IMG/VR virus record: IMGVR_UViG_3300037882_003354
Location: 124,001-188,000 of that record
Reading direction: 5' to 3' (one strand)
DNA: 64,000 nt
The notes beneath the pieces are model-generated. The model was not told the DNA's origin. It ran no database searches and worked only from the letters and a program-made list of their open reading frames with translations. Below, in pieces: positions 1 through 13,480 of this stretch. The position numbers were made by a program, and so were the translations under genes. Within the stretch, counting starts at the first letter, position 1. Every line of letters begins with the position of its first letter.

Positions 1-17
1 TTGAACCTGGAATCCTG

Positions 18-242
18 ATGAATCACAGTCCCATTCTGCAGTGGACAGCCACTGCCGTGACACTGCTGGGCGCCATGCTCACAGCGGCAGCTCTGGATCC
101 CTGGAATGTCTACTGTCTGAATGCCGGCAGTGGCCTGTGGCTCATCTGGGCCTGGCGGGTGCGCAGCCGCAGCTTGATCGTGGTCAACGCTGGCCTGGTG
201 CTCATATACATGGCAGGCCTGGTCCGAGCCTTCTTTGCTTGA
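18..242 (+). CDS. small membrane protein
   Basis: 74 aa, three hydrophobic segments; TGA stop lies inside the next TTGACA. Confidence 0.7.
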   Translation: MNHSPILQWTATAVTLLGAMLTAAALDPWNVYCLNAGSGLWLIWAWRVRSRSLIVVNAGLVLIYMAGLVRAFFA

Positions 243-266
243 CAATCTGGATCATTGTGCTATAGT
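239..266 (+). promoter_or_regulatory. early sigma70-type promoter P1
   Basis: TTGACA-16-TATAGT with TGn extended -10. Confidence 0.8.
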
Positions 267-296
267 ACTGACATCGCAACACAACAAGGAAGACAC

Positions 297-554
297 ATGA
301 AGAAAGACCTTATGACCCGTGACCTGAAACGGCATGCCCTGGTACAAGACACCGTGACTGGCTTTGTGCAGGCTCAGTACGAATTGCATGACAGCCATGC
401 CTACGCCACCGGCTACATGGAGAGCCTGCTGGTGCAGATCTTGACCTATCACGTGACTGAGGCCAACCGTGCCCGATTCCTGGATGAGCTGGCTCGCAGC
501 GCCGACAAGGCTCGGGTGGAGAGCACCTACAGGGCATTGACCCTGGCTGCGTGA
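297..554 (+). CDS. hypothetical early protein
   Basis: AAGGA SD before ATG 297; open ORF. Confidence 0.75.
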   Translation: MKKDLMTRDLKRHALVQDTVTGFVQAQYELHDSHAYATGYMESLLVQILTYHVTEANRARFLDELARSADKARVESTYRALTLAA

Positions 555-733
555 TGACTGACTACCAGTTCTGCATGATCCTCCGCGATGGCGGCCATCG
601 GATCATCACCGTGGGGGCGGAGAATCAGGATCACGCCCATGACATGTTCCATCGCATCTACGGCACGGACCTGCCGGCCTTCCTGTACCAGCACCCGCCG
701 GCCTTTGTTCAAGAACTGGTTGACAACTCCTGA
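551..733 (+). CDS. hypothetical early protein
   Basis: 60 aa ORF coupled to the upstream stop (GTGATG). Confidence 0.65.
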   Translation: MMTDYQFCMILRDGGHRIITVGAENQDHAHDMFHRIYGTDLPAFLYQHPPAFVQELVDNS

Positions 734-747
734 ACTCCTGCTATAAT
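720..747 (+). promoter_or_regulatory. early promoter P2
   Basis: TTGACA-16-TATAAT. Confidence 0.85.
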
Positions 748-780
748 ACATTCATCACAACGCAACAGGGGAAGCAGAGC

Positions 781-1053
781 ATGGCCTACGTATTGATCAA
801 TCGCAACCAGAAGGGACGGCAAGAAGCCATCCGCACCTATGCCACCTACAAGGGTGCCCTGATTGGCATGCGCGTGAGCAACCGCAACGCCGGCTGGACT
901 CGTAGCAGCCGCTGCTACCTGGGCTACTGCGCCATGGAATGGGGTCATGATGCCGCTGGCGACTACGAGTACGCACCCTACGCCATCATGCACGAGTTTG
1001 ATTACAAGATGCGGCATCAGCCTCTTGACACGGTGCGTGGGGCCGCTGTATAA
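781..1053 (+). CDS. hypothetical early protein
   Basis: AGGGG SD, 90 aa ORF. Confidence 0.75.
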   Translation: MAYVLINRNQKGRQEAIRTYATYKGALIGMRVSNRNAGWTRSSRCYLGYCAMEWGHDAAGDYEYAPYAIMHEFDYKMRHQPLDTVRGAAV

Positions 1054-1054
1054 T
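1025..1054 (+). promoter_or_regulatory. early promoter P3
   Basis: TTGACA-18-TATAAT-acacac-ATG. Confidence 0.85.
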
Positions 1055-1060
1055 ACACAC

Positions 1061-1255
1061 ATGAAGACACAACAGGAGCAACAGATGAATGACTTTAGAC
1101 GGGCCATGCGAGTCATGTGCTCTGCATGTCAAGAATTTCACCAGGTGAAGGATGTGAAATTCATTGACATCCAGGAAGATTATGCCGGCAGGGATCTGAT
1201 GACCTTTGAGTGCTCGGTGACCAGCACCCAACAAAAGGCCTACGTGCTGGGCTGA
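1061..1255 (+). CDS. small zinc-ribbon-like protein (dual start 1061/1085)
   Basis: CSAC...FEC motif; ATG at predicted +1 and in-frame SD-led ATG. Confidence 0.7.
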   Translation: MKTQQEQQMNDFRRAMRVMCSACQEFHQVKDVKFIDIQEDYAGRDLMTFECSVTSTQQKAYVLG

Positions 1256-1259
1256 TCAC

Positions 1260-1287
1260 TTGACAATTGGTGCCATGATGTTATAAT
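1260..1287 (+). promoter_or_regulatory. early promoter P4
   Basis: TTGACA-16-TATAAT-acacac-ATG. Confidence 0.85.
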
Positions 1288-1293
1288 ACACAC

Positions 1294-1518
1294 ATGATGA
1301 CACAACTGGAGCAACACATGAATGAATTCGTAGCATCGGCAGTGGATCGGGTGGAGAGCAAGTTCCTGGTCCACTGCGACACTGATGTTCCAGCCGAGAT
1401 CCTGGCTGATGTCCTGCACTATTGCCGGGTCAAAGGCATTGACTTCGACAACGAGCTGCGCCTGGCTCGTGACTACGTGGAGGCAGAACTGGCTGAGTTT
1501 TTCGGTGTAGGTGCTTGA
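1294..1518 (+). CDS. hypothetical early protein (dual start 1294/1318)
   Basis: 74 aa; ILADVLHYC...GIDFD helical motif; stop inside next TTGACA. Confidence 0.75.
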   Translation: MMTQLEQHMNEFVASAVDRVESKFLVHCDTDVPAEILADVLHYCRVKGIDFDNELRLARDYVEAELAEFFGVGA

Positions 1519-1542
1519 CAACCGGAGCGATCCTGCTATAAT
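1515..1542 (+). promoter_or_regulatory. early promoter P5
   Basis: TTGACA-16-TATAAT-gctgac-ATG. Confidence 0.85.
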
Positions 1543-1548
1543 GCTGAC

Positions 1549-1875
1549 ATGGACAACGCAAAGGAGCAGCAAATGGAACTGAACACACGGCAGGTACGGG
1601 CAATTGCATTGAAGGCAACGGACAAGCCCTTCCACACTTGGACGGACAAGACCAGCGACTACGATGACGCACGACGCAGCGTGGTGTGGAGTTTTTATGG
1701 CACGGGTGGGGCACAGGCATTGTTTGACCTGTTGCAGGCAGAGTTTGCACGGCTGGGCGTGACGAATAAGTTGACGCTCACGGGCACTGCCTATGAATAC
1801 GTGCGCGTGATTGCACCCCTGGGCAATCTGCCTGCCCTGCGCTGGCAGGACTTGCCTGAAGTTTATCCCATCTGA
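1549..1875 (+). CDS. hypothetical early protein (dual start 1549/1573)
   Basis: 108 aa ORF, AAGGAG internal SD. Confidence 0.75.
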   Translation: MDNAKEQQMELNTRQVRAIALKATDKPFHTWTDKTSDYDDARRSVVWSFYGTGGAQALFDLLQAEFARLGVTNKLTLTGTAYEYVRVIAPLGNLPALRWQDLPEVYPI

Positions 1876-1889
1876 TGGTGGCAGGGTGC

Positions 1890-1918
1890 TTGACAACACC
1901 AGCACCCTGCGCTATAAT
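1890..1918 (+). promoter_or_regulatory. early promoter P6 with inverted repeat across -35
   Basis: TTGACA-17-TATAAT; GCAGGGTGCT 1881-1890 / AGCACCCTGC 1901-1910. Confidence 0.85.
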
Positions 1919-1924
1919 ACACAC

Positions 1925-2149
1925 ATGACGACGCAACAACAGGAGAGGCAAATGACGGTGACCCAATACCTGATGACCCAGGGCTGCGGCCAGGAAGAGA
2001 TCCGCACCATCCTGGAAGAGATGGAGTATCACAGGCAGCAGGAGCTCTGGGTGTCCCAGGACCCCCACGGCGATGAGGGCATGGACTGGGATGCGTTTGA
2101 TGACGCGCAGGCCGAAAGGCTCTGGCCAGAAGCAGAAGATTTTGCTTGA
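1925..2149 (+). CDS. small acidic protein (dual start 1925/1952)
   Basis: MTTQQQERQM start; D/E-rich; stop inside next TTGACA. Confidence 0.7.
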   Translation: MTTQQQERQMTVTQYLMTQGCGQEEIRTILEEMEYHRQQELWVSQDPHGDEGMDWDAFDDAQAERLWPEAEDFA

Positions 2150-2173
2150 CATTCCAAACGAATGCGTTATAAT
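2146..2173 (+). promoter_or_regulatory. early promoter P7
   Basis: TTGACA-16-TATAAT. Confidence 0.85.
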
Positions 2174-2206
2174 GCAGACTTACACACAACGAAAGGCGAC
2201 ACTAAC

Positions 2207-3085
2207 ATGGCAAAGGCAGCAATGAAGAACCCCAGCAAAGGCACCAGCACCGTGCTGGAATTTGACACCGACGCTATCAAAAGGCGTGAACAAGAAGTGG
2301 CACTGGAGAGCGATGAGGACATCATCAATCGCCTGCGCGAGCGCTTTGACATCCTGACTGACATGACCAAGGCGGTCAAAGAAGGCCATGTGCGGGCCAT
2401 GATTGTAAGCGGTCCACCGGGCGTGGGCAAGAGCTACGGCGTGGAGGCTGTGCTGGAGAAGGACGACTTGTTCAACAAGTTGGCAGAACGCAAGCCCAAG
2501 TACGAGATCGTCAAGGGCGCCATGAGCAGCATTGGACTCTACGCCAAGCTCTACGAGTTCAGCAAGGCTGGCAACGTGGTGGTGTTCGACGACTGCGACA
2601 GCATCCTGATGGAGGACCTGAGCCTGAACATCCTGAAGGGTGCACTGGACAGCAGCAGCCGCCGCTTCATCAGCTGGAACACCGACAGCCGCATCCTGCG
2701 CGCCGAGGGCATTCCCGACCGCTTTGAGTTCTGTGCAGGTGCCATCTTCATCACCAACATCAAGTTTGAGCACGTGCGCAGCAAGAAGCTCAAGGACCAC
2801 CTGGATGCACTGGAGTCGCGCTGCCACTACATTGACCTGCAGATGGACACCACACGCGAGAAGATCCTGCGCATCCGGCAGATCATCAACGATGGCATGC
2901 TGGAGAAGTACGAGTTCAGTCAGCCGGACCTGGTGCGTGACGAGCTGGTGGAGTTCGTGGTGGACAACCAGGACCGACTGCGTGAGCTGAGCCTGCGCAT
3001 GGTGCTCAAGTTGGCGGACCTGCGCAAGAGCTTCCCCACCAATTGGCAAGCCATGGCCAAGACCACTTGTATGCGTCGGTCATGA
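2207..3085 (+). CDS. AAA+ family P-loop ATPase
   Basis: Walker A GPPGVGKS, Walker B VVVFDDCD, sensor FITN, arginine-finger-like ALESRC. Confidence 0.85.
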   Translation: MAKAAMKNPSKGTSTVLEFDTDAIKRREQEVALESDEDIINRLRERFDILTDMTKAVKEGHVRAMIVSGPPGVGKSYGVEAVLEKDDLFNKLAERKPKYEIVKGAMSSIGLYAKLYEFSKAGNVVVFDDCDSILMEDLSLNILKGALDSSSRRFISWNTDSRILRAEGIPDRFEFCAGAIFITNIKFEHVRSKKLKDHLDALESRCHYIDLQMDTTREKILRIRQIINDGMLEKYEFSQPDLVRDELVEFVVDNQDRLRELSLRMVLKLADLRKSFPTNWQAMAKTTCMRRS

Positions 3086-3360
3086 TCAACCAACTGCTCT
3101 ACGCCACCTGGGTGGAGCGCCTGGTGGCGCTCACCGCCCAGGCCCTGGTGCTGTGGTGGGTGGGTGCCCAACTGGAGGGAGATCACTTCTGGGCCTTGTG
3201 CAGCATCCTGGCCATGACCCTGGTGTTGGAGTACTTGGCCTGGCAACAGGGCATTGCACAAGGCATGGCCATCTACGCGGGACTGACACCACAGCAACAG
3301 GCTGACGTCAGTGCCATCTTAAACTCAACCGACGACACAACTGAAGAAGAACAAAAATGA
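3082..3360 (+). CDS. membrane protein
   Basis: ATGA overlap with the ATPase stop; two hydrophobic helices. Confidence 0.7.
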   Translation: MINQLLYATWVERLVALTAQALVLWWVGAQLEGDHFWALCSILAMTLVLEYLAWQQGIAQGMAIYAGLTPQQQADVSAILNSTDDTTEEEQK

Positions 3361-3587
3361 ACAACCCATGCACCTGGATTGGCCCATACGGACTAAAGTG
3401 TACATGTGACCGACCGGCCATGCCCACCCGCAACTATTGTGAGGATCACATCTGGTTGATCTATCAGAAGGGCACCAACCTACGCCGACGACACAAGGAC
3501 ATTCGAGTGGCTAATGCCGTGTGGGACTGGGAGAGCGAGTTCAACTCAGCGGTGCAGGAACTGGTGGAAGAAGGCTTCGAAGTTTAA
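3357..3587 (+). CDS. small Cys/His-containing protein
   Basis: CTW..C.C..NYCEDH; ATGA overlap. Confidence 0.7.
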   Translation: MNNPCTWIGPYGLKCTCDRPAMPTRNYCEDHIWLIYQKGTNLRRRHKDIRVANAVWDWESEFNSAVQELVEEGFEV

Positions 3588-3595
3588 AAGATTGC

Positions 3596-3623
3596 TTGAC
3601 ATCTCTTGTGATTGTGCTATACT
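3596..3623 (+). promoter_or_regulatory. early promoter P8
   Basis: TTGACA-16-TATACT. Confidence 0.85.
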
Positions 3624-3653
3624 ACATTCATCAACAACGCAAAGGAAGACGAA

Positions 3654-4268
3654 ATGCCTAACTGGTGCAACAATCGAGTGACACTGACCCACACAGACCC
3701 TGTGATGATTGACCGTGCTGTCAAGGCCTACCAACAGGGTCGCTTGCTGAACGAGTTCATCCCTGTGCCACAGGAACTCATGGACACCCAGGCCAGCCCG
3801 GGCACCCAGGAGGAGGCCCTGGTGGCCCAGCGCACAGCCAATACAGAGAAGTTTGGTTTCGCCGACTGGTATACCTTCTGTCTGACCAACTGGGGCACCA
3901 AGTGGGATGTGGGTGGCGATGGTGAGTTCATCGAGCAAGACTCGCCCAATGAGGTCGAACTGGCTTTTGACAGCGCCTGGGCACCACCCATTGCGGCCTA
4001 CGAGCAACTGGAGGGCCTGGGTTTTGAGATTGAAGCCTATTACTTTGAACCCGGCATGGCCTTCTGCGGCGTCTGGACCAATGAGTTCGGTGACGACTAC
4101 TGTGAATACACAGACATGACACCGCAAGAGATCCGTGATCAGATGCCCGAGATTGACGAACGCTTCTGCATCAGCGACATGCTGGAGGAGTGGGCACGAG
4201 AAGAGGCTGAGAATGAAGAGAACCTGGAGATTGACCTGGACGGCGGCTTGAGCGCCACCAACGAATAA
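3654..4268 (+). CDS. DUF1281/YubB ferredoxin-like domain protein
   Basis: MPNWCNN, W..C..NWGTKWD and FDSAWAPP motifs characteristic of this family. Confidence 0.75.
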   Translation: MPNWCNNRVTLTHTDPVMIDRAVKAYQQGRLLNEFIPVPQELMDTQASPGTQEEALVAQRTANTEKFGFADWYTFCLTNWGTKWDVGGDGEFIEQDSPNEVELAFDSAWAPPIAAYEQLEGLGFEIEAYYFEPGMAFCGVWTNEFGDDYCEYTDMTPQEIRDQMPEIDERFCISDMLEEWAREEAENEENLEIDLDGGLSATNE

Positions 4269-4271
4269 AGA

Positions 4272-4300
4272 TTGACAGGGGCTCAGTCCCCTGTTATAAT
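4272..4300 (+). promoter_or_regulatory. early promoter P9 with hairpin in spacer
   Basis: TTGACA-17-TATAAT; ACAGGGG 4275-4281 / CCCCTGT 4288-4294. Confidence 0.85.
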
Positions 4301-4329
4301 ACGACATCAACACAACAAAAGGAAACAAG

Positions 4330-4719
4330 ATGGCAACTCGCGGCGTAATTGGGGTCATGTATGGTGAAGTCTGCAAGAGCATTTATGTGCACTGGGATTC
4401 GTATCTGGGCGGTGTGGGTGCCACGCTGCTGGAGAACTACGGACGAGTGGGTGCTAGCGAACTCATTGCCTGCGGCAACGTCAGCAGCCTGGGTGCCACC
4501 ATTCCGGACACCCGGTTCTTTGACCAAGAAACCGAGTGCCTGACTGCCAACAACTTTGAAGAGTTCCTGGATCAGTGGGGCGACTCCTGGATAGAGTACA
4601 TGTACATCATGGGCATGGATGAGCAGTGGTATGTGGTGCGTGACAACCGCAGCCTGCAACTGTTGAGCGAGGCCCTGGCGGCCGAACGGGCCTTGGACAA
4701 CATGAAGGAGCAAGCATAA
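4330..4719 (+). CDS. conserved phage hypothetical protein
   Basis: MATRxxIG...SIYVHWDSY motif typical of a widespread phage early family; AAAGGA SD. Confidence 0.75.
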   Translation: MATRGVIGVMYGEVCKSIYVHWDSYLGGVGATLLENYGRVGASELIACGNVSSLGATIPDTRFFDQETECLTANNFEEFLDQWGDSWIEYMYIMGMDEQWYVVRDNRSLQLLSEALAAERALDNMKEQA

Positions 4720-4931
4720 TGGGTCTGGAAAAGGTGGTGCTCAGGGACTTGGAAGATGAATCGGTCTATGACGTCTATTGGTCATCAGGCCGCTTGTACT
4801 ACATGAACGAATGGGACTTGCCCACCATTCGTCAGGTGCTCAGGGATCGTTACCCATTGGTGAACCAGGACATCCTGGTGGCTGATACAGATGCTGTCAT
4901 GTTCGATCCCTATGCAACTGTCAACAGCTAG
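4719..4931 (+). CDS. hypothetical protein
   Basis: TAATG coupling, AAGGAG SD. Confidence 0.7.
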   Translation: MGLEKVVLRDLEDESVYDVYWSSGRLYYMNEWDLPTIRQVLRDRYPLVNQDILVADTDAVMFDPYATVNS

Positions 4932-4969
4932 ACACCCTAAAACCCCGCTGCAAGGGTGGGCAGAATCGG

Positions 4970-4998
4970 TTGACAAGACTGAATTTACATGTTAAACT
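4970..4998 (+). promoter_or_regulatory. early promoter P10
   Basis: TTGACA-17-TAAACT. Confidence 0.65.
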
Positions 4999-5049
4999 AA
5001 TGACACTGGACCAATGATGGTTCGGTATTACACACACAAAGGAAATTTT

Positions 5050-5451
5050 ATGACTGACAAGACTTATACCCACGCTGGCGTGAGCACTTTTGAAGGCGTG
5101 ATCAAGCCGCGCTTCACCTGCAATCCCAATCGTGTGAAGACCATGATCAAGGAAGGGCACACTGCCATCGACTTCCTGGAGCTCTTGAAGCCCATGACCA
5201 CGCAGGAGGCCATCGCTTACTTGCTCAAGATCAATTACGGTGACGACGCCACTCGTGCGGCACTCACGGCAGCCCTGGACCGTCGCGTGCCGGCTGTCAA
5301 GGCACCCAAGACCGTCCGGGTCAAGGCTGAGAAGAAGGTCAAGCCCACCTTGTCGTCCATCGCTGCACGTGGCCCCCGCAATCCTGTGACCCAGGTCACC
5401 CGAGCTGAGGTTGAAGCCCAGCTGGCCGATCTGGACGACGCGCCCTTCTAA
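5050..5451 (+). CDS. basic hypothetical protein
   Basis: AAAGGA SD; K/A/P-rich C-half, ends DLDDAPF (SSB-like acidic tip). Confidence 0.75.
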   Translation: MTDKTYTHAGVSTFEGVIKPRFTCNPNRVKTMIKEGHTAIDFLELLKPMTTQEAIAYLLKINYGDDATRAALTAALDRRVPAVKAPKTVRVKAEKKVKPTLSSIAARGPRNPVTQVTRAEVEAQLADLDDAPF

Positions 5452-5456
5452 GCACC

Positions 5457-5669
5457 ATGAGCCAACTGCTGTTCGTTGGCCGTCCCTGGACGGTGTTTGA
5501 CGCCCACAACCGTCAGCACCGCCAGTGGTTCGCGGAGTTCCAGCGCCGCCGCTCCTGGGGCTCCTGTCCTGTCAGGTTCATCATCCCGGACGACGCTGGG
5601 GACTTATTGAGTATGATCCAGGGCCGGTTAATAGAATATTATACCAATAAAGAGTTTAAAATCAGTTGA
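5457..5669 (+). CDS. hypothetical protein
   Basis: 70 aa, FD..N..HR..F..F....SWG.CP motif; stop inside next TTGACA. Confidence 0.75.
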   Translation: MSQLLFVGRPWTVFDAHNRQHRQWFAEFQRRRSWGSCPVRFIIPDDAGDLLSMIQGRLIEYYTNKEFKIS

Positions 5670-5720
5670 CATCCTGACAGATACTGTATACCATAGTATC
5701 AACTGTTTGAATACAGTATC
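5666..5720 (+). promoter_or_regulatory. promoter P11 with candidate operator
   Basis: TTGACA-17-TACCAT; perfect IR GATACTGTAT 5680-5689 / ATACAGTATC 5711-5720. Confidence 0.65.
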
Positions 5721-5736
5721 ACATAAGGATATCAAA

Positions 5737-5982
5737 ATGAGTTTAATCAAATTAACCAAGCCGCAAAACCAATTTCTAGAAGAGCACCTTCGTGGAACTG
5801 GACGCACCCTGAGCGCACGTCAGGCACGGGCCGCCTACGGCATCCAGAACCTCCGCGCTCGCATGACGGAACTTCGTCACGCTGGGTTGCGAGTCACCAC
5901 TGACATCAACAGTCAGGGCCGCACAGTGTATGCCATCAGCAGCCGTGACGTCACCGGCAGTCGTGCTGCCCGCTTTGCCTGA
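5737..5982 (+). CDS. winged helix-turn-helix DNA-binding protein
   Basis: LSARQARAAYGIQNLRARMTELRHAGLRV pattern of HTH_39-like wHTH; TAAGGA SD. Confidence 0.7.
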   Translation: MSLIKLTKPQNQFLEEHLRGTGRTLSARQARAAYGIQNLRARMTELRHAGLRVTTDINSQGRTVYAISSRDVTGSRAARFA

Positions 5983-6200
5983 TGCATGACATCACAGTCG
6001 CCGTGCAGTTGACTGGGCAGGATCTGGAGTTCCTGGACTCGGTGTTGAAGTGTGTGATTGACACCAACACTGAGCAGGAGGCTGAGACACTGACCCTGCT
6101 GCGTGCCAGACTGGCCCATGCCCAGGCAGAGTTGATGAGTGCCAGGGCCATGGCCCTGGCATTAAATACTCAGTCTTATATTAAAGGAGATAGATTATGA
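5982..6200 (+). CDS. hypothetical protein
   Basis: TGATG coupling; 72 aa. Confidence 0.6.
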   Translation: MHDITVAVQLTGQDLEFLDSVLKCVIDTNTEQEAETLTLLRARLAHAQAELMSARAMALALNTQSYIKGDRL

Positions 6201-6430
6201 GCAATTTAGATACTAAAGTATCAGAAGTCACCGCGGAAGTGGTAGTCAGTCAGTTGACTGGCAAGAAGTGGTACCTGTCCAAGACACTCTGGGCCAACGT
6301 GGGCATGATTGCAGCCATCTGGTTCCAGGGCCACTTTGGAGTTGCCATGAGCGTGGAACTGCAGGCCCTAATCATGGCTGGTGTCAACATGGCACTGCGC
6401 ACCATCACCAAGGAACCTGTGGTCTGGTGA
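6197..6430 (+). CDS. small membrane protein, possibly holin-like
   Basis: GKKWYLSKTLWAN followed by two TM helices; AAGGAG SD; late-type TAAATA at 6163-6168. Confidence 0.55.
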   Translation: MSNLDTKVSEVTAEVVVSQLTGKKWYLSKTLWANVGMIAAIWFQGHFGVAMSVELQALIMAGVNMALRTITKEPVVW

Positions 6431-6431
6431 G

Positions 6432-6460
6432 TTGACAAGAACCGCATCACCTGCTATACT
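6432..6460 (+). promoter_or_regulatory. early promoter P12
   Basis: TTGACA-17-TATACT. Confidence 0.8.
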
Positions 6461-6488
6461 GACTCCACATTAACACATGGAGTTGGAA

Positions 6489-6575
6489 ATGCAGCAGGTG
6501 AAATTGGTTCTGGGTTGGATCGCCGTCATTGTCCTGTCAGCCTTCATGGGTGTTTTACTCGCCTGGAGGGGTTGA
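6489..6575 (+). CDS. 28 aa single-TM micro-protein (not in ORF track)
   Basis: MQQVKLVLGWIAVIVLSAFMGVLLAWRG; GGAG SD; own promoter; stop inside next TTGACA. Confidence 0.65.
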   Translation: MQQVKLVLGWIAVIVLSAFMGVLLAWRG

Positions 6576-6600
6576 CAGGACTCTTCTCTGACTGTAGAAT
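6572..6600 (+). promoter_or_regulatory. early promoter P13
   Basis: TTGACA-17-TAGAAT-acacac-ATG. Confidence 0.8.
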
Positions 6601-6606
6601 ACACAC

Positions 6607-6807
6607 ATGAAATACAACATCCAGCAAGAGACCACCCAGTGGGCCAGCCCCACCACTCCCAATCATGTGTACATTTTTGAAGGCACGGTGAGCGGCCGTG
6701 GGGCCAAGGCCATTGGCTACGTCAAGGCTGGCACCACTCACGTGCAGCGATTCCGTGTGCCCATGATGATGGACACTCGCGGCAGGACCTTTGTTGCCTT
6801 GAAATGA
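6607..6807 (+). CDS. hypothetical protein, leaderless
   Basis: ATG 6 nt after -10, no SD, no nearby alternative start. Confidence 0.75.
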   Translation: MKYNIQQETTQWASPTTPNHVYIFEGTVSGRGAKAIGYVKAGTTHVQRFRVPMMMDTRGRTFVALK

Positions 6808-6992
6808 GAAACAGCAGATACGGTTTTGACACCCTGCCAGCCATCCCATTCACCAGTGCGCCCTGGGTGCCTGTGGGTGAAGCCACTGAGATCACCTGGG
6901 CTCAGGCCTACTCACAGTGGAGTCAGGCGCAACGGGTGCCCGTGACACCACAGGACTTCTTGAAGGCCTTCAGGCTTGACTCCGACAGATGA
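6804..6992 (+). CDS. hypothetical protein
   Basis: ATGA overlap; 62 aa. Confidence 0.6.
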   Translation: MRNSRYGFDTLPAIPFTSAPWVPVGEATEITWAQAYSQWSQAQRVPVTPQDFLKAFRLDSDR

Positions 6993-7004
6993 TGCTGCTA
7001 GAAT
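6976..7004 (+). promoter_or_regulatory. early promoter P14
   Basis: TTGACT-17-TAGAAT. Confidence 0.75.
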
Positions 7005-7030
7005 AGATGCAAGACAACAGGAGTAGACGA

Positions 7031-7177
7031 ATGCCATACACATTGATCACTCCACTGGGACAGATTTACACTTTCTATCTCCAGGTGACGGCCCAGACAT
7101 TCCAGCAGGCCTACGGTGGTCACATCCTGACTGCCGATATGCTGCAGACTGAAGCCCAGCCCATACTCATCAACTAA
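7031..7177 (+). CDS. 48 aa hypothetical protein (not in ORF track)
   Basis: CAGGAG SD; MPYTLITPLGQIYTFY...FQQAYGGHI. Confidence 0.65.
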   Translation: MPYTLITPLGQIYTFYLQVTAQTFQQAYGGHILTADMLQTEAQPILIN

Positions 7178-7188
7178 AAGGAAACCCT

Positions 7189-7434
7189 ATGAAAAACTCC
7201 ACTCTTGCCGCCTGGCGCACCGCCGGCTGGGTCTTGGCCATGGTGGCCTTGTGCCTGATTGCTCACCTGACATTCACCCTGGTGCCCGCCCAGGTGCTGC
7301 TCAACAGCCTGTATGCCCTGATGGGCATTGGCGCCGTGGTGGGCCTGTATCATATAGCACTGGCTCAGATTGAGTACCAGCAGGTGGCACGTGACATCGC
7401 CCAGCGTGAAAAGTTCCCCAACATCCAGGAATAA
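7189..7434 (+). CDS. membrane protein
   Basis: AAAGGA SD; two TM helices. Confidence 0.7.
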   Translation: MKNSTLAAWRTAGWVLAMVALCLIAHLTFTLVPAQVLLNSLYALMGIGAVVGLYHIALAQIEYQQVARDIAQREKFPNIQE

Positions 7435-7437
7435 GTC

Positions 7438-7465
7438 TTGACAAATCGTCAGAAGTCGCTATAAT
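7438..7465 (+). promoter_or_regulatory. early promoter P15
   Basis: TTGACA-16-TATAAT. Confidence 0.85.
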
Positions 7466-7472
7466 GGATCAC

Positions 7473-7718
7473 ATGACGACGCAACAACAGGAGCAGAACA
7501 TGGGCTACACCGTAATCGCAGACAAGTATCAAATGGACCAGATGCGCGACAATTACGGTCCACGCCGGGGCTTGGAAGGGCCTTTCAACTTCAGCGGCCG
7601 GGTTCTGTATTACGACGTCCAGGAGGGCAAGTACTATGACCCTCGCAGCGATTTTTATGTGGAGCAGGATGAAATGAACCTGATCAACGCCCGGCTCATG
7701 AACACGCTCAGGGGCTGA
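7473..7718 (+). CDS. conserved phage hypothetical protein (dual start 7473/7500)
   Basis: GLEGPF...GRVLYYD..EGKYYDP..DFY motif. Confidence 0.75.
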   Translation: MTTQQQEQNMGYTVIADKYQMDQMRDNYGPRRGLEGPFNFSGRVLYYDVQEGKYYDPRSDFYVEQDEMNLINARLMNTLRG

Positions 7719-7719
7719 C

Positions 7720-8070
7720 ATGAGCCGGAACACTCGCATCCATGCACACCGCATGATCCAGGTGATCAAGACTGGTGCCCTGGACACACAGAGCACTGAG
7801 TTTGACGCATGGCAGACGCCCACCACAGCCACCTGGCACATCCTGATCCCTGTGGACACGGCCGCCCGACTGCAGGCCTATCGTGACTGGGTCATGAGCG
7901 CCTGCCAGGATGAGACCGAGAACGTCTACGCTGAGGACGACTTGTTCCAGGCGGGCGAGCCCGTGAGCACGGTCATCGTCAATCACGGGCGTGATCACAT
8001 CGCCCAATTGGATGAGTGGCTGGCGCTCTTGGAGCAGACAGGCTGGGAAGTGTCAGTGGATGCCTGGTAA
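7720..8070 (+). CDS. hypothetical protein
   Basis: 116 aa ORF immediately after the previous stop. Confidence 0.7.
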   Translation: MSRNTRIHAHRMIQVIKTGALDTQSTEFDAWQTPTTATWHILIPVDTAARLQAYRDWVMSACQDETENVYAEDDLFQAGEPVSTVIVNHGRDHIAQLDEWLALLEQTGWEVSVDAW

Positions 8071-8073
8071 GGC

Positions 8074-8101
8074 TTGACACGGCCTGAGAAGTCGCTATAA
8101 T
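8074..8101 (+). promoter_or_regulatory. early promoter P16
   Basis: TTGACA-16-TATAAT-gaacac-ATG. Confidence 0.85.
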
Positions 8102-8107
8102 GAACAC

Positions 8108-8212
8108 ATGAAGACAAAAGACCTACTGTTTGAAATTGAAGTCATCCTCATGCTCATCGTGGGCTTTGGATTGTTTTTCGCACTCCTTTACATGGCAGGA
8201 ATGACACTATGA
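8108..8212 (+). CDS. 34 aa leaderless single-TM micro-protein (not in ORF track)
   Basis: MKTKDLLFEIEVILMLIVGFGLFFALLYMAGMTL; ATG at predicted +1; ATGA overlap with next gene. Confidence 0.65.
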   Translation: MKTKDLLFEIEVILMLIVGFGLFFALLYMAGMTL

Positions 8213-8445
8213 GCAAGATGAGTGAACTATTTTACGACCTCCTGGAGATGCTGGAACTGGGCCGCACTGATTCAGAAATCAGCCTGGCCACCGGCTTCCC
8301 GCTGGAAGCCATTGCCATCTGGCGGGCAGATGCTGAACTGCGCCCTGAGAGCGCCAGTGAAGAGAGCGACTGGCAAACCGACACCGGGCCTGGTGATGAA
8401 GAGGATGGCTGGGACGATGACGAATGGTTCATCCAGGCCGAGTGA
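8209..8445 (+). CDS. highly acidic small protein
   Basis: short HTH-like N-half, D/E/W-rich tail. Confidence 0.7.
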   Translation: MSKMSELFYDLLEMLELGRTDSEISLATGFPLEAIAIWRADAELRPESASEESDWQTDTGPGDEEDGWDDDEWFIQAE

Positions 8446-8450
8446 CAGAC

Positions 8451-8768
8451 ATGCGGCCACCACCCCAGAACGTGCCCACCCTGACTGACGTGGTGCATGA
8501 GCCACCACCCAGGTGGGTGGTGCATCAGACTCTGAGCGACCACCAGCTGCCCAAACTCAGCTGCATCATGCTGCACCTGCGACTGCATGAACAGTATTAT
8601 CAGGTGCAGCTGAGCACCTCACGTGGCATCTGGGCCATGATTCGCCTGGCCCTGGTGCCCCTGTCGGAGATTCAACAGGCCAACGACCTGTTGCGCATGA
8701 AGATCCAGAAGTACGGTGACATCCGAGGATATCGCCTGCTGGTGGCGGGTTGCAGGAAAAACACTTGA
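8451..8768 (+). CDS. hypothetical protein
   Basis: fills the gap to the next promoter; stop inside TTGACA. Confidence 0.6.
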   Translation: MRPPPQNVPTLTDVVHEPPPRWVVHQTLSDHQLPKLSCIMLHLRLHEQYYQVQLSTSRGIWAMIRLALVPLSEIQQANDLLRMKIQKYGDIRGYRLLVAGCRKNT

Positions 8769-8792
8769 CATCCTGACGGAAGTCGCTATAAT
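8765..8792 (+). promoter_or_regulatory. early promoter P17
   Basis: TTGACA-16-TATAAT-gatcac-ATG. Confidence 0.85.
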
Positions 8793-8798
8793 GATCAC

Positions 8799-9239
8799 AT
8801 GACGACGCAACAGGAGCACCAGATGGCTAAATTGAACAAAGAACAGCGCGAAGCCCTGGCCGTGGCCGATGCCCAGGCTGAACAGGCCCGGCTGCAGTCC
8901 CTGGTGGACTCCTATCCCCAGCGCCTGATGGACGCTCTGAGCCGGGCCCTGGCCCAGGGTGCTCATGCGGATGTGGATGCCCCGGGCATGTTCTTCAGTG
9001 TGGTGTTCCGTGACTCAGGGCGTGTGATCAATGTGTCCTATGCATGCGGCGGGCCCATGGATGAGGAGTATCTGCAGGACCTGCTGTTCGAGGTGGCCCA
9101 CCTGGAGTTCCTGCGTGAGGAAGAACGCCGCCTGGAACAGGTGCGAGTCACGGCCCTGGCCAAACTGTCGGATGAAGAAATCAAGGTCTTGGGGCTCCAG
9201 TGCGCCGCCCGGGGCACCTGGAACCGCGACTGCTATTGA
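8799..9239 (+). CDS. hypothetical protein (dual start 8799/8823)
   Basis: coiled coil ending ALAKLSDEEIKVLGL. Confidence 0.75.
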   Translation: MTTQQEHQMAKLNKEQREALAVADAQAEQARLQSLVDSYPQRLMDALSRALAQGAHADVDAPGMFFSVVFRDSGRVINVSYACGGPMDEEYLQDLLFEVAHLEFLREEERRLEQVRVTALAKLSDEEIKVLGLQCAARGTWNRDCY

Positions 9240-9253
9240 GCCGGGAGCACCTG

Positions 9254-9469
9254 ATGTACGCACTATTCGCTGGAGATGTATTCTACCCACAGGGCGGCTG
9301 GCGGGACCTGCAGGGAGTGTACCAGACCCTGACACAGGCACAGGAGGCCCTGGCTCGCATACAATCTGAGCCTGATGAGCACGGTGACGTGCCCGATGCC
9401 TTCGAATGGGCTCACGTGGTGGACCTGCGCCGTGCCCATCTGGTGTGGGACTGGCACCGTCAGGATTGA
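9254..9469 (+). CDS. conserved phage hypothetical protein
   Basis: GGGAG SD; LFAG..FYP.GGW.D...WAHVVD motif. Confidence 0.7.
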   Translation: MYALFAGDVFYPQGGWRDLQGVYQTLTQAQEALARIQSEPDEHGDVPDAFEWAHVVDLRRAHLVWDWHRQD

Positions 9470-9493
9470 CATTCAGCACAGGGTGTGTATAAT
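9466..9493 (+). promoter_or_regulatory. early promoter P18
   Basis: TTGACA-16-TATAAT-gcactc-ATG. Confidence 0.85.
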
Positions 9494-9499
9494 GCACTC

Positions 9500-9578
9500 A
9501 TGCGTTCGAACAGTCTGACTGGGGGTGGACGGCGAGGCTGGGCCACATGATGGCCCTCCCTTTCCCTGAAAGAAACAG
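9500..9578 (+). ncRNA. candidate small RNA or 16-aa leaderless peptide
   Basis: strong promoter followed by only 79 nt before the next promoter; hairpin GGGCCA-catga-TGGCCC. Confidence 0.35.
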
Positions 9579-9606
9579 TTGACAAGACGGCACAAGGCGC
9601 TAGAAT
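9579..9606 (+). promoter_or_regulatory. early promoter P19
   Basis: TTGACA-16-TAGAAT. Confidence 0.8.
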
Positions 9607-9613
9607 ACATGAC

Positions 9614-9820
9614 ATGACGACGCAACTTCAACTGGAGCAGAACATGGACATGAACCAACGCCGCCAACTGGCCCTCCGCGCAGCCGCAGCCTTCCGTGAA
9701 GCCTGGGCGCTCATGGACCAGGCCATTGGCTGGGACGCCAGCGGCGCCCTGGCTGAGGATGGCCTGGTCACCATCATCCACGAACTGGAGCGGCAGGAGT
9801 TCGTGGGAGTGGCGGAATAA
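9614..9820 (+). CDS. hypothetical protein (dual start 9614/9644)
   Basis: 68 aa ORF, GGAG internal SD. Confidence 0.7.
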   Translation: MTTQLQLEQNMDMNQRRQLALRAAAAFREAWALMDQAIGWDASGALAEDGLVTIIHELERQEFVGVAE

Positions 9821-9827
9821 GGAGCAC

Positions 9828-10058
9828 ATGATGAAGCGTCAATACAATAAATGGAGTGAGATCCTGAAGGGTGATCTATCCGCCCAGGATCGTCGAAAGA
9901 TTCGGAACTCTGTCACACTATACGTTCAGACCCCCAAGGGCTGGAACAGCGTTGCCGTATGCTATACCCGACAAGAAGCTGAAGAGTTCAAAGAACGAAT
10001 TGTTCGGGGCAGGTTCACACTCAAATACGAGCACGAAAAAGTCTTTAAAATTGGTTGA
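9828..10058 (+). CDS. basic hypothetical protein
   Basis: TAAGGAG SD; visibly more AT-rich than neighbours; stop inside TTGACA. Confidence 0.7.
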   Translation: MMKRQYNKWSEILKGDLSAQDRRKIRNSVTLYVQTPKGWNSVAVCYTRQEAEEFKERIVRGRFTLKYEHEKVFKIG

Positions 10059-10082
10059 CATTCCGGCAGAAGGCGGTATAAT
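10055..10082 (+). promoter_or_regulatory. early promoter P20
   Basis: TTGACA-16-TATAAT-acacac-ATG. Confidence 0.85.
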
Positions 10083-10088
10083 ACACAC

Positions 10089-10532
10089 ATGACGACGCAA
10101 CAGGAGCCAACAATGACTGAAGCCACTTTCCCCAGCTGGGACGACATGACGGACCTGCAGCAGGCCCAGTGCATGTTCTGGGACATGTACAAGGACGCCC
10201 ACGGCTTCCGTCCCCGTGGCGTGGACACCAGCGCCTGGACCCTGGAGGACTTCAGCCGGGAGTTTGACTTCCTGGGGCGGGTGATTGAGCAGCAGGAACA
10301 GGAGCGCATCCTGAAGGAGCAGCAGGCCATCACCCACTTTGAGCGCCGCCTGCAGGAGTTGATGAAACTGGGCGCCCAGGACCGTGAGGACGCCATCCGC
10401 TGGTGCCTGGATGCGGACGATGCCCGGGACCTGGAGGACTTGGCCTGGCGCAACGAACTGCCCTGGAACTACCTCCGGGTTCAGCCCCTGCGTGGTGACG
10501 GCCGCTACGACGCTGAAGTCAGCGACGAATAA
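10089..10532 (+). CDS. conserved phage hypothetical protein (dual start 10089/10113)
   Basis: WDMYKDAHGFRPR motif. Confidence 0.8.
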   Translation: MTTQQEPTMTEATFPSWDDMTDLQQAQCMFWDMYKDAHGFRPRGVDTSAWTLEDFSREFDFLGRVIEQQEQERILKEQQAITHFERRLQELMKLGAQDREDAIRWCLDADDARDLEDLAWRNELPWNYLRVQPLRGDGRYDAEVSDE

Positions 10533-10536
10533 AGGC

Positions 10537-10564
10537 TTGACATTCCGGCTGCGGCCGCTATAAT
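10537..10564 (+). promoter_or_regulatory. early promoter P21
   Basis: TTGACA-16-TATAAT-acacac-ATG. Confidence 0.85.
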
Positions 10565-10570
10565 ACACAC

Positions 10571-11488
10571 ATGACGACAACTACACAGGAACGCAACATG
10601 AAGACAGGCATCATCGTATTCTCCGAAGGCAAGTGGCAGGGTCGTGACGAACAAGGCCGCATCTTGCTCACCAGCGTGGACCAGGACCGTGTGCGCCGTG
10701 TGCTCATGAAAAAGCACGAGTGCACCAACGTCCAGATCCTGGATCAAGCCCAGTCAGAGGCTGCCGAGACCCAGAGCCAGTGGCCCATCAATCAGCGTTT
10801 CGACTTCCTGAGCCAGCTGGTGCGCATGGTGGGACAAGGCAACGCGGTGAGCTTGATTGTCACGGGTCCCGGCGGCCTGGGCAAGACCCACACGGTGCGT
10901 GAGGGACTCCTGGCATGTGGCCTCAAAGAAGCCACCGTGGACGGCGTGAATGGCGAAGGCACCTTCAAGATCATCAAGGGCTACAGCACCGCCAAGGGCT
11001 TGTACCGCGAGCTGTATCAGAACCAGGACAGCGTGTTGGTGTTTGACGACTGCGATGATGTGCTCAAGGATCCCACTGCACTCAACCTGCTGAAAGGCGC
11101 ACTGGATTCGTACGACAAGCGCATCATCAGCTGGAATGCAGACATGCGTGACGACGACCTGGAGCGCAGTTTCCAGTTCAACGGCCGCGTGATCTTCATC
11201 AGCAATCTCAACCGCGATCGCATGGACACGGCACTCAAGACCCGAGCCTACTGCGTGGACCTGGCCATGAGCTTGAGCCAGAAGATCGAGCGCATGCAGG
11301 TGCTGGCTGCGTCGGATGACTTCATGCCACGTGCCCGCCGTGAGCACAAGGCCGACGCCCTGGCTCTGATCCAAGAGCTGGGCCCACGCTGCCGTGAAGT
11401 CAGCCTGCGCACCCTGCAGGCCGTCACCCGCATCCGTGCTGCGGGCGGCGCCTGGCGTGAACTGGCAGAGTACACCCTGACCAATTGA
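10571..11488 (+). CDS. AAA+ family P-loop ATPase, paralog of 2207..3085 (dual start 10571/10598)
   Basis: GPGGLGKT, VLVFDDCD, LNLLKGALDS, RIISWN, FISN, REVSLR. Confidence 0.85.
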   Translation: MTTTTQERNMKTGIIVFSEGKWQGRDEQGRILLTSVDQDRVRRVLMKKHECTNVQILDQAQSEAAETQSQWPINQRFDFLSQLVRMVGQGNAVSLIVTGPGGLGKTHTVREGLLACGLKEATVDGVNGEGTFKIIKGYSTAKGLYRELYQNQDSVLVFDDCDDVLKDPTALNLLKGALDSYDKRIISWNADMRDDDLERSFQFNGRVIFISNLNRDRMDTALKTRAYCVDLAMSLSQKIERMQVLAASDDFMPRARREHKADALALIQELGPRCREVSLRTLQAVTRIRAAGGAWRELAEYTLTN

Positions 11489-11514
11489 CACACCAGGGCT
11501 CCTGCCCTTATAAT
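11485..11514 (+). promoter_or_regulatory. early promoter P22
   Basis: TTGACA-18-TATAAT-gcattc-ATG; IR CAGGGCTCCTG 11494-11504 / CAGGAGCCCTG 11530-11540. Confidence 0.8.
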
Positions 11515-11520
11515 GCATTC

Positions 11521-12255
11521 ATGATGACCCAGGAGCCCTGCATGCTGCAAGAACGAATCCAACTGGTCCAAGCAAAGATCCAGACCCTGATCACCCAGTG
11601 GTCTGCCCAGACTGGGCAGACCCTGCCTGACATCCAGGTGAAGTTTGATCTGCGCGGCCGGGTGGCTGGCTGGGCCGGGTCACGTGGTGGCCGGTACTTC
11701 ATGCGCTTCAACACCGACATGATGCAGAACGCCGCATGGACGCATGTGATCAACAACACCGTGCCACACGAGCTGGCCCACGTCATCTGCTTTGTTCAGG
11801 GCACGGACTCAGGACATGGCCGTGTATGGGTCAGAACCTGCCGCAGCCTGGGCGGTAATGGAGAGCGTTGCCACTCAGAGGCTGTCACATACGCCAAAGG
11901 CAAGACCTATGTGTACACCACCCACACGGGCCGCACCATCCACCTGAGCAGCATCAAGCATAAGAAGATCCAGCAGGGCGCATCCTATACGGGACGCAAC
12001 GGCCTGGGCCGCATAGACAGCCGGTGTGCATATCATGTGCTGGGGCAGACTGTACAGCCCGTGACCCGTGTGACGCCACCCGTGGCAGCACCGCGTGTGG
12101 TCTCGGGCAGCCGTGCGGCGCAGGTGCGCGCCTGGATAGTGCAGGGTCTGACCCAGGCTCAGGTTTATGAGCTGTGCCGGAGCCAGCTGGCTCAGACTGA
12201 CGCTCAGGCCCGACAGTATTGGAGGACCGAGAGTGCCAAGGTGGGCCGTGTGTGA
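11521..12255 (+). CDS. SprT-like zinc metalloprotease
   Basis: LRGRVAG, VPHELAH (HExxH), HG..W....R.LG, RCH motifs of the SprT family. Confidence 0.85.
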   Translation: MMTQEPCMLQERIQLVQAKIQTLITQWSAQTGQTLPDIQVKFDLRGRVAGWAGSRGGRYFMRFNTDMMQNAAWTHVINNTVPHELAHVICFVQGTDSGHGRVWVRTCRSLGGNGERCHSEAVTYAKGKTYVYTTHTGRTIHLSSIKHKKIQQGASYTGRNGLGRIDSRCAYHVLGQTVQPVTRVTPPVAAPRVVSGSRAAQVRAWIVQGLTQAQVYELCRSQLAQTDAQARQYWRTESAKVGRV

Positions 12256-12340
12256 GGGTGGCTCAGGTGGGCAGGGTAGGGTGCCCAGGGCTCAGTCGAC
12301 AAATGCCATCACTTGCTGGACTTTTGCAAGCTGCATGCTT

Positions 12341-12382
12341 TCTTCAAATGATCTTCAAATGATCTTCAAATGATCTTCAAAA
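12341..12382. repeat. 11-bp tandem repeat TCTTCAAATGA x3.8
   Basis: copies at 12341, 12352, 12363 and partial at 12374. Confidence 0.95.
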
Positions 12383-12459
12383 TAAACCATCAAACCTTCA
12401 AAATACCACAGGGGTGTTAGAGTGAATACCTGTTTCTAGACTTCTTAAAAACACAGAAT

Positions 12460-13427: not shown

Positions 13428-13468
13428 AGACCCGCGCCGGACTCACCGCCATTCTTTTCATCCGGACA

Positions 13469-13474
13469 TAAATA
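13469..13474 (+). promoter_or_regulatory. late-type promoter TAAATA
   Basis: cATAAATA 6 nt before ATG 13481; resembles T4 late TATAAATA. Confidence 0.6.
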
Positions 13475-13480
13475 TTCACT

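Follow-up and report, generated by a model that had tools for sequence, protein, structure and literature searches.

The stretch of DNA analysed here (the window: 64,000 nucleotides, positions 124,001 to 188,000 of the record IMGVR_UViG_3300037882_003354, a 322,512-bp metagenomic contig) begins with a phage early region built from a repeated promoter and leader cassette. In ten copies of this cassette the predicted transcript opens with an AUG codon that is in frame with a second AUG, the one led by the Shine–Dalgarno (SD) sequence of the gene. Genes for a tail sheath, a large terminase, and DnaB-type and other helicases in the remainder of the window point to a jumbo myovirus; phage and host are both uncultured. 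A megablast search against 50,697 phage records matched no near relative, and exact-protein look-ups, in which near-identical genomes were sought for polymorphism, returned the phage's own contig as the sole match. The early region (239–11544, extended by 4.2 kb upstream of the window, locus L003) is a rightward array of small genes mostly without family assignment, most of them lacking a Pfam match, and nearly every one is preceded by its own sigma70 promoter. Positions 1–13000 hold 25 sigma70-like sites, compared with 6.5 +/- 3.1 in shuffled sequences, and 14 perfect (12/12) and 5 near-perfect (11/12) promoters lie within 12 kb. Among the 30 promoters tabulated for the early region, 14 carry the ATG, three of them in front of leaderless open reading frames (ORFs).

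The cassette is a unit of about 60 bp. Its sigma70 promoter matches the consensus, the discriminator has C as its last base, and position +1 is an A (CAT); the leader that follows, of 21–30 nt, is unstructured, poor in T and rich in CA/ACA, and a GGAG or AGGA SD stands 6–7 nt before the ATG of the gene. In the ten copies that concern us (1025–11544), TTGACA-N16–18-TATAAT is followed 6–7 nt on by a first ATG (ATG1), then by the C/A-rich leader, the SD and the second ATG (ATG2). The distance from ATG1 to the -10 box is 6 nt in eight copies and 7 nt in the two others, and no in-frame stop separates the two ATGs. The positions, and the spacings (each a multiple of three), are those listed in the original prediction, made from the letters of this stretch:

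1025–1087, plus strand: dual-start cassette, -35 at 1025, -10 at 1049, ATG1 at 1061, SD at 1074, ATG2 at 1085; spacing 24 nt
1260–1320, plus strand: dual-start cassette, ATG1 at 1294 (ATGATG), SD at 1308, ATG2 at 1318; 24 nt
1515–1575, plus strand: dual-start cassette, ATG1 at 1549, ATG2 at 1573; 24 nt
1890–1954, plus strand: dual-start cassette, ATG1 at 1925, ATG2 at 1952; 27 nt
7438–7502, plus strand: dual-start cassette, ATG1 at 7473 (7 nt after the -10), ATG2 at 7500; 27 nt
8765–8825, plus strand: dual-start cassette, ATG1 at 8799, ATG2 at 8823; 24 nt
9579–9646, plus strand: dual-start cassette, ATG1 at 9614 (7 nt after the -10), ATG2 at 9644; 30 nt
10055–10115, plus strand: dual-start cassette, ATG1 at 10089, ATG2 at 10113; 24 nt
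10537–10600, plus strand: dual-start cassette preceding an AAA ATPase gene, ATG1 at 10571, ATG2 at 10598; 27 nt
11485–11544, plus strand: dual-start cassette preceding a SprT-like gene, ATG1 at 11521 (ATGATG), ATG2 at 11542; 21 nt

Start sites and SDs were called heuristically; architecture, spacing and frame are read directly from the DNA. The leaders are composed of A 0.46, C 0.28, G 0.23 and T 0.03, and with only 3% T the absence of stops in them is uninformative as evidence of coding. The mean unpaired probability of leader nucleotides 1–12 is 0.56–0.97, reaching at least 78% in 9/10 ATG cassettes, and the z-scores of the minimum free energy are positive in every cassette. The 5' AUG, the SD (+14 to +18) and ATG2 (+22 to +31) fit inside one to two ribosome footprints.

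Counted from the -10, the A of ATG1 is bp 7, or bp 8 in two copies, and the base before it is C. Sigma70 RNA polymerase preferentially starts at this distance of 7 bp, on a purine that follows a pyrimidine (PMC5730371). ATG1 thus matches the preferred transcription start site (TSS) in position and context, and an mRNA that opens with AUG is predicted. 5'-terminal AUGs bind 70S ribosomes, including on SD-leadered Escherichia coli mRNAs, and are translated (PMC4965119), and leaderless translation is enhanced by CA repeats after the start codon (PMC9031893). The reading that we favour, to which we give a probability of about 0.58, is that ribosomes recognise the 5' AUG and that selection keeps its frame, so that 6–9 harmless residues are added to the protein. 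The early region would be transcribed by the host RNA polymerase from the A of ATG1; some ribosomes would initiate at the 5' AUG in the leaderless mode and others at the SD-led ATG2, and those that started at the 5' AUG would read through the SD and ATG2, yielding a minor isoform whose 6–9 extra N-terminal residues are translated leader. Since such ribosomes must cross the SD and ATG2, a 5' AUG should be tolerated chiefly in leaders that are in frame and open, and out-of-frame versions should be selected against because ribosomes would be wasted and the SD and ATG2 occluded. We infer the TSS at ATG1 and initiation there; selection on the frame is supported statistically by the following comparisons.

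Related contigs provided 35 loci that share early genes with the phage (the ATPase encoded at 2207 is up to 82% identical in them), in which 176 SD-led cassettes were scored. Leaders that are in frame and open make up 21/30 of those with ATG at +1, compared with 41/146 of those without (p=3.3e-5), and leaders whose length is a multiple of three (3n) make up 22/30 and 57/146, respectively (p=0.001). Grouped by eye, the in-frame copies of these relatives make up about 13 sequence groups, 18–33 nt long, and are therefore apparently not one inherited leader. A broader contrast came from two matched scans of IMG/VR that differed solely in the +1 triplet, ATG or ATH (H being A, C or T), and in which ATG2 had to open at least 40 codons. 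Among the matches listed, 39/102 ATG cassettes were in-frame-open, compared with 20/131 ATH cassettes (p=7.5e-5); once the matches listed had been clustered by coding sequence, the counts were 37/95 and 17/121 (p=3.4e-5). The effect depends on position, as 53/128 cassettes with ATG at offsets 5–7 were in-frame-open compared with 14/82 with ATG at offsets 0–3 or 10 and beyond (p=2e-4), and base composition was controlled for, the T content of ATG and non-ATG leaders being equal (0.174). Together, the related-contig, IMG/VR, position and composition contrasts lead us to conclude that an ATG at the predicted start is visible to selection. We found no description of such a cross-phage frame-selection signal in the literature searched. 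Leaders holding a stop in frames 0, 1 and 2 amount to 26, 51 and 36% with ATG and to 34, 39 and 37% without; the depletion of stops is specific to frame 0 of the ATG leaders, the non-ATG leaders being flat. At loci L005–L286, the frame +1 stops of leaders with ATG at +1 (the 51%, against 39% for non-ATG leaders) are in excess.

Two accounts of these patterns were considered and set aside. One is that a mini upstream ORF serves as a "safe" alternative to the in-frame extension; stops before the SD are rarer, not commoner, with ATG at +1 (11% compared with 31%, among the IMG/VR matches listed). The other is that the in-frame pairs of SD and ATG2 are accidental motifs inside leaderless genes, a contribution that we judge negligible: about 6/32 leaderless-type ORFs, from a mostly ATPase-ascertained set, contain such a pair, and a rough estimate of its chance occurrence is about 0.3%.

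The same promoter type also drives genes for which the 5' AUG is the sole start, with no SD-led start behind it; in the window these are only the ORFs at 6607, 8108 and 9500:

6572–6807, plus strand: leaderless gene of 66 amino acids, TTGACA-17-TAGAAT-ACACAC-ATG (6607), without SD
8074–8212, plus strand: leaderless gene with a hydrophobic ORF of 34 amino acids, perfect promoter, ATG at 8108, 6 nt after the -10
9466–9550, plus strand: leaderless small ORF of 16 codons (9500–9550) behind a perfect sigma70 promoter, followed by a hairpin

The N-terminus of ORF 6607, MKYNIQQETTQW, aligns with the start of its homolog in locus L181 (MKWFAETTEW), so ATG 6607 is the true N-terminus. ORF 8108 opens with ATGAAGACA, the first nine bases of the extension of the cassette with ATG1 at 1061, and overlaps the next gene through ATGA, to which it is coupled. 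The small ORF at 9500–9550 is followed by a GGGCCA/TGGCCC hairpin just before the next promoter, and the whole unit (9466–9578) may serve to make a small RNA or peptide. The ATGs that follow a -10 were also surveyed in 46 related loci, 45 of which were fetched through the AAA ATPase and were therefore not selected for any start-site feature; the remaining one, contig L002, shares an early gene with the phage and was fetched through the leader pattern. L002 has an ORF of 76 amino acids that begins with ATGACGACGCAAC (MTTQQ) 6 nt after TATAAT, without SD. In the 46 loci, ATGs behind a -10 peak sharply at offset 6 (39/271 sites, with 3–14 at neighbouring offsets), and 32/39 of these offset-6 ATGs open ORFs of at least 50 codons; the genes include one of the NT5C family, starting MITLYLDMDGV, and one of the UvdE family. 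One leaderless gene on TATAAT-N6-ATG recurs at six loci (L079, L090, L151, L070, L105 and L164) with a similar N-terminus, M-N/K-x-x-K-x-x-R-K-K-R-x-D-R-x-H-I-x-Y; four of the six share early genes with the phage.

Several observations weigh against a translated and selected 5' AUG, among them the comparison of the cassettes within the phage. Locus L003 holds 10 further copies, one with ATG at +1 (24 nt) and nine without, two of which are out of frame (20 and 25 nt); joined to the window it brings the number of SD-led cassettes to 27. The window members without ATG1 that are homologous to the dual-start cassettes keep the frame as well, with the distances (24, 27, 24, 24 and 27 nt) given previously for four ATC-headed copies and one TTA-headed copy:

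239–299, plus strand: homologous cassette, ATC at +1 (273), gene ATG at 297; 24 nt
720–783, plus strand: homologous cassette, ATC at +1 (754), gene ATG at 781; 27 nt
2146–2209, plus strand: homologous cassette, TTA at +1 (2180), gene ATG at 2207; 27 nt
3596–3656, plus strand: homologous cassette, ATC at +1 (3630), gene ATG at 3654; 24 nt
4272–4332, plus strand: homologous cassette, ATC at +1 (4306, 5 nt after the -10), gene ATG at 4330; 24 nt

All 11 cassettes with ATG at +1 are 3n and open, and so are 12/16 of those with ATC, ATT or TTA (Fisher p=0.12), the exceptions having leaders of 20, 25, 22 and 20 nt; within the phage the frame thus does not separate ATG from non-ATG cassettes, and since the 3n spacing is common to both, the ten window copies are little independent evidence. 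The caveat of shared ancestry raised at the outset is decisive here, as the ATG copies represent about 3 subfamilies and about 4 independent indels (+3, +6, +3 and -3), all sitting in CAA/ACG triplet repeats or tandem duplications that would slip by 3 anyway; the leader of cassette 9579–9646, for example, holds a 6-nt tandem duplication, CAACTT/CAACTG, and that of cassette 1515–1575 belongs to the AACAACGCAAAGGA subfamily, whose other members are ATC-headed. CAT at the start site is a classical TSS context, so that only the G needs explaining. In the relatives 8/30 ATG cassettes are out of frame or closed, and among the IMG/VR matches listed, samples that comprise the first 120 and 117 matches with a promoter spacer of 17 only, 62% of ATG cassettes are not in-frame-open. 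The description of the leaders as always in frame does not hold across phages: ATG-bearing leaders of the relatives are not frame-random, nor are they always 3n. Finally, with host and phage uncultured, the TSS and initiation at ATG1 are predictions. Translation from ATG1, as originally proposed, is made plausible by the TSS geometry, the leaderless genes and the comparative frame-keeping; the 3n spacing within the phage is not specific to ATG and lends it little help.

The simplest reason for the excess of 3n and open leaders among this phage's non-ATG cassettes (12/16, compared with 28% in the relatives; binomial p=1e-4) is that the cassettes recently expanded from a T-poor ancestor of 24 nt; a speculative alternative is that they exchanged sequence with ATG-bearing halves. 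Initiation at the near-cognate AUC or AUU was rejected as the cause of the excess, ATH leaders elsewhere being in-frame-open in 15% of the matches listed. The ortholog of cassette 2146–2209 in locus L091 has a leader of 20 nt.

These facts are the substance of a different explanation, in which ATG1 is incidental and not meaningfully translated: a CAT start context happened to be followed by G, the 3n spacing was copied from a 24-nt ancestral leader, later indels were slippages of CAA/ACG triplets, and the frame is open merely through lack of T. The many 3n and open non-ATG cassettes, the 3% T of the leaders, indels that are duplications of CAA or of a 6-mer, the recent expansion of a few subfamilies, and the existence of RB49-type cassettes (described below) with an ACACAC-AT discriminator and a CA-rich leader without ATG all fit this explanation, which we consider a real, though lesser, possibility. 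It leaves unexplained why in-frame-open leaders are 2.5–3 times commoner with ATG at +1 in the relatives and among the IMG/VR matches listed, why this effect is confined to the predicted start position at equal T content, and why leaderless genes are found on the same promoter type. Those same contrasts, which speak for a usable ATG1, are shared by the proposal that the two starts are an adaptive dual route, by which early genes stay expressed when SD-dependent initiation is impaired or which provides two functional isoforms. The presence of ATG in nearly half of the tabulated early promoters and the recurrence of dual-start cassettes in unrelated leader sequences of the relatives also agree with it. 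We nevertheless find it improbable: half of the region's cassettes lack ATG1 with no visible difference in the type of gene, most ATG cassettes elsewhere are out of frame (IMG/VR matches listed), the extension is not conserved as a peptide, and no translation-modifying factor was seen among the proteins checked. A tRNA scan of the window found none. Moreover, insurance against toxins that cleave the anti-SD, as originally suggested, would rest on a model in which MazF generates "stress ribosomes", and other laboratories could not reproduce that model (PMC9031893). Slightly less probable again is that the 5' AUG is a landing or shielding site, at which a ribosome held at the 5' end would block 5'-end-dependent decay or boost the supply of ribosomes to ATG2, in-frame read-through being a side effect. 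The compactness of the 5' AUG, SD and ATG2 would suit such a role, and mutation of E. coli 5'-terminal AUGs alters downstream expression to varying degrees (PMC4965119); no sequence feature is specific to this idea, and it does not require frame-keeping per se, save to avoid harmful out-of-frame read-through.

The extension peptides bear on these choices. They read, in the order of the cassettes, MKTQQEQQ, MMTQLEQH, MDNAKEQQ, MTTQQQERQ, MTTQQQEQN, MTTQQEHQ, MTTQLQLEQN, MTTQQEPT, MTTTTQERN and MMTQEPC, so the shared MTTQQE extension reported before is not uniform. The Q-E or K-E pair is the SD read as codons (CAG GAG or AAG GAG), and the rest consists of the ACN and CAA codons of the CA-rich leader; in the in-frame extensions of the relatives, the SD-derived residue pair is the sole common feature. 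The homolog of gene 7500 in L002 begins MAYTV (MGYTV here) at the residue equivalent to ATG2, and orthologs of gene 10113 align from ATG2; these alignments indicate that ATG2 is the conserved protein start. That MTTQQE could be a shared targeting or degradation tag, as also envisaged, draws on the MTTQ(Q)Q..E common to five copies; it is very hard to maintain and we reject it, because the other extensions vary (MKTQQ, MMTQL, MDNAK, MTTTTQ, MMTQEP), the Q-E derives from the SD, and homologs start at the ATG2 equivalent. In the JGI gene calls for the same contig (L287), most dual-start genes are begun at ATG1, the ATPase for instance having 305 rather than 296 amino acids, and database N-termini are therefore probably too long; one JGI call begins at an ATG inside the -10 (window position 7464).

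The nearest functional precedent for a translated 5' AUG in front of a canonical start is the E. coli class of 5'-terminal upstream AUGs (5'-uAUGs; Beck, Fleming & Janssen 2016, PMC4965119), in which a 5'-terminal AUG is likewise followed by a leader, an SD and a downstream start, an arrangement that is present here in the 10 window copies and the one upstream copy if the TSS is where we place it. E. coli 5'-uAUGs are translated up to the level of lambda cI, their mRNAs being both leaderless and canonical; that study chose out-of-frame uAUGs on purpose and left out those in frame, which "could produce longer isoforms" (PMC4965119). The phage cassettes differ in that the AUG is in frame, 21–30 nt upstream and inside a repeated phage cassette, and in that there is comparative evidence of frame selection. 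Natural leaderless mRNAs, such as lambda cI from PRM and Tn1721 tetR, resemble the predicted transcripts in having the start codon at the 5' end, in requiring AUG, and in the enhancement of translation by CA-rich downstream sequence (PMC9031893). They have no SD-led second start, whereas here a leaderless start appears superimposed on a canonical one: all ten copies combine the ATG and unstructured 5' end of leaderless messages with an SD-led start, which such messages lack. The composition of the leaders (46% A, 28% C), with ACA and CAA motifs immediately before the SD and immediately after ATG1, recalls the CA-repeat and ACA enhancers (Martin-Farmer & Janssen 1999, as summarized in PMC9031893; Yang et al. 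2014, PMC3879156), ACA motifs before an SD being known to enhance initiation (PMC3879156). An enhancer role would explain the leader composition, and explains neither the ATG at +1 nor its frame.

The nearest structural precedent is the promoter early stem-loop (PeSL) cassette of RB49, phi1 and other T4-type phages (PMC2839356, PMC4122927), also repeated in ORFan-rich early regions, with a near-perfect TTGACA-N17-TATAAT promoter and an SD and start codon at its 3' end. In the RB49-like phage kaaroe, TATAAT-ACACAC-ATA/ATC precedes a CA-rich leader and an SD; the discriminator ACACAC-AT is thus common to kaaroe and the present cassettes, but RB49-type leaders differ in having ATA or ATC at +1, frame-random lengths of 26–28 nt, and a TAG before the SD. 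In the present array a stem-loop is found in about 5/30 cassettes. It is clear at 1890, where an 8-bp GC-rich inverted repeat, CAGGGTGC / GCACCCTG (1868–1912), encloses the -35 (DNA fold -14.1 kcal/mol, z -4.5) and forms the array's only strong PeSL-like stem-loop; weaker ones lie at 4272 (inside the promoter spacer), 11485, 10537 and L003:3297, about 25 other cassettes show none, and no terminator-like sites exceeded shuffled expectation. With so few stem-loops and no excess of terminator-like sites we have not classed the array as PeSLs. PeSLs recombine by crossovers in the interval from the -10 to the SD (PMC2839356), which suggests by analogy a way in which promoter halves and leader halves could be exchanged. 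In cultured relatives the search for the same cassette gave only weak blastn matches (E about 5), to RB49-like PeSLs without ATG. The ATPase is 46–48% identical in Ralstonia phage RsoM2USA and Pseudomonas phage PA5oct, and RsoM2USA has no small-ORF early region near its ATPase match. New here, relative to these precedents, is the building of predicted in-frame 5'-uAUGs into a repeated phage early cassette.

A stronger version of the reading that ribosomes see the 5' AUG takes such dual-mode early mRNAs, with a leaderless 5' AUG and an in-frame SD-led AUG, for a deliberate design that is widespread among phages. Strong early cassettes of many T4-like and jumbo phages would then load ribosomes at the 5' end as the transcript emerges, making early expression independent of the SD or additive to it, or protecting the 5' end, and 5'-AUG use would have left its evolutionary signature in the in-frame rule. 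We hold this to be rather doubtful. Leaderless initiation is usually deemed marginal outside Actinobacteria and archaea; if 5' AUGs are used as proposed, it would be routine in the early expression of large environmental groups of T4-like and jumbo phages, many phage early proteins would exist as two N-terminal proteoforms with an annotated start that is often wrong, and the frame statistic would be a purely computational read-out of 5'-AUG translation in uncultured phage–host systems. Under the same condition, a synthetic cassette with a consensus promoter and CATG at the start site would create a second, SD-independent start.

Other elements of the early region are less directly related to the dual start. 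Two promoters have leaders that do not keep the frame:

6432–6491, plus strand: early promoter with a non-homologous 22-nt leader, without 5' ATG and not 3n
6976–7033, plus strand: early promoter with a 20-nt leader counted from the predicted +1, and an ATG at 7007

ATG 7007 is merely 2 nt after the -10 and therefore probably outside the mRNA; it lies exactly 24 nt from ATG2 in an open frame (6999–7033), which may be coincidental or reflect the decay of a dual-start cassette. L003:1490–1535 is a remnant cassette (TGTAAT-ACATTC-ATC, a 27-nt leader, SD and ATG) that has no recognisable -35 and directly follows an upstream stop codon. The early region has two AAA ATPase genes, 2207–3085 and 10598–11488, and reciprocal tblastn hits to the same loci suggest that they are paralogs; homologs occur in about 1300 records of T4-like and jumbo phages, where they are frequently annotated "thioredoxin". 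At 5666–5982 palindromic ATACTGTAT/ATACAGTAT motifs overlap a promoter whose -10 is weak (TACCAT) and which lies upstream of a gene of 91 amino acids with the JGI tag HTH_39, an arrangement reminiscent of a repressor that regulates itself through its own operator. The last early gene is separated from the long ORF that comes next by a 1.2-kb stretch (12256–13480) that could be a regulatory or origin-like region: it holds a tandem 11-mer of the TCTTCAAATGA type (12341–12381), a 37-nt repeat with a terminal T-run (12573–12609 and 12933–12969), a CCCGGAAAA-ATGGGGCCC repeat at 12485 and 12620, and long-range inverted repeats.

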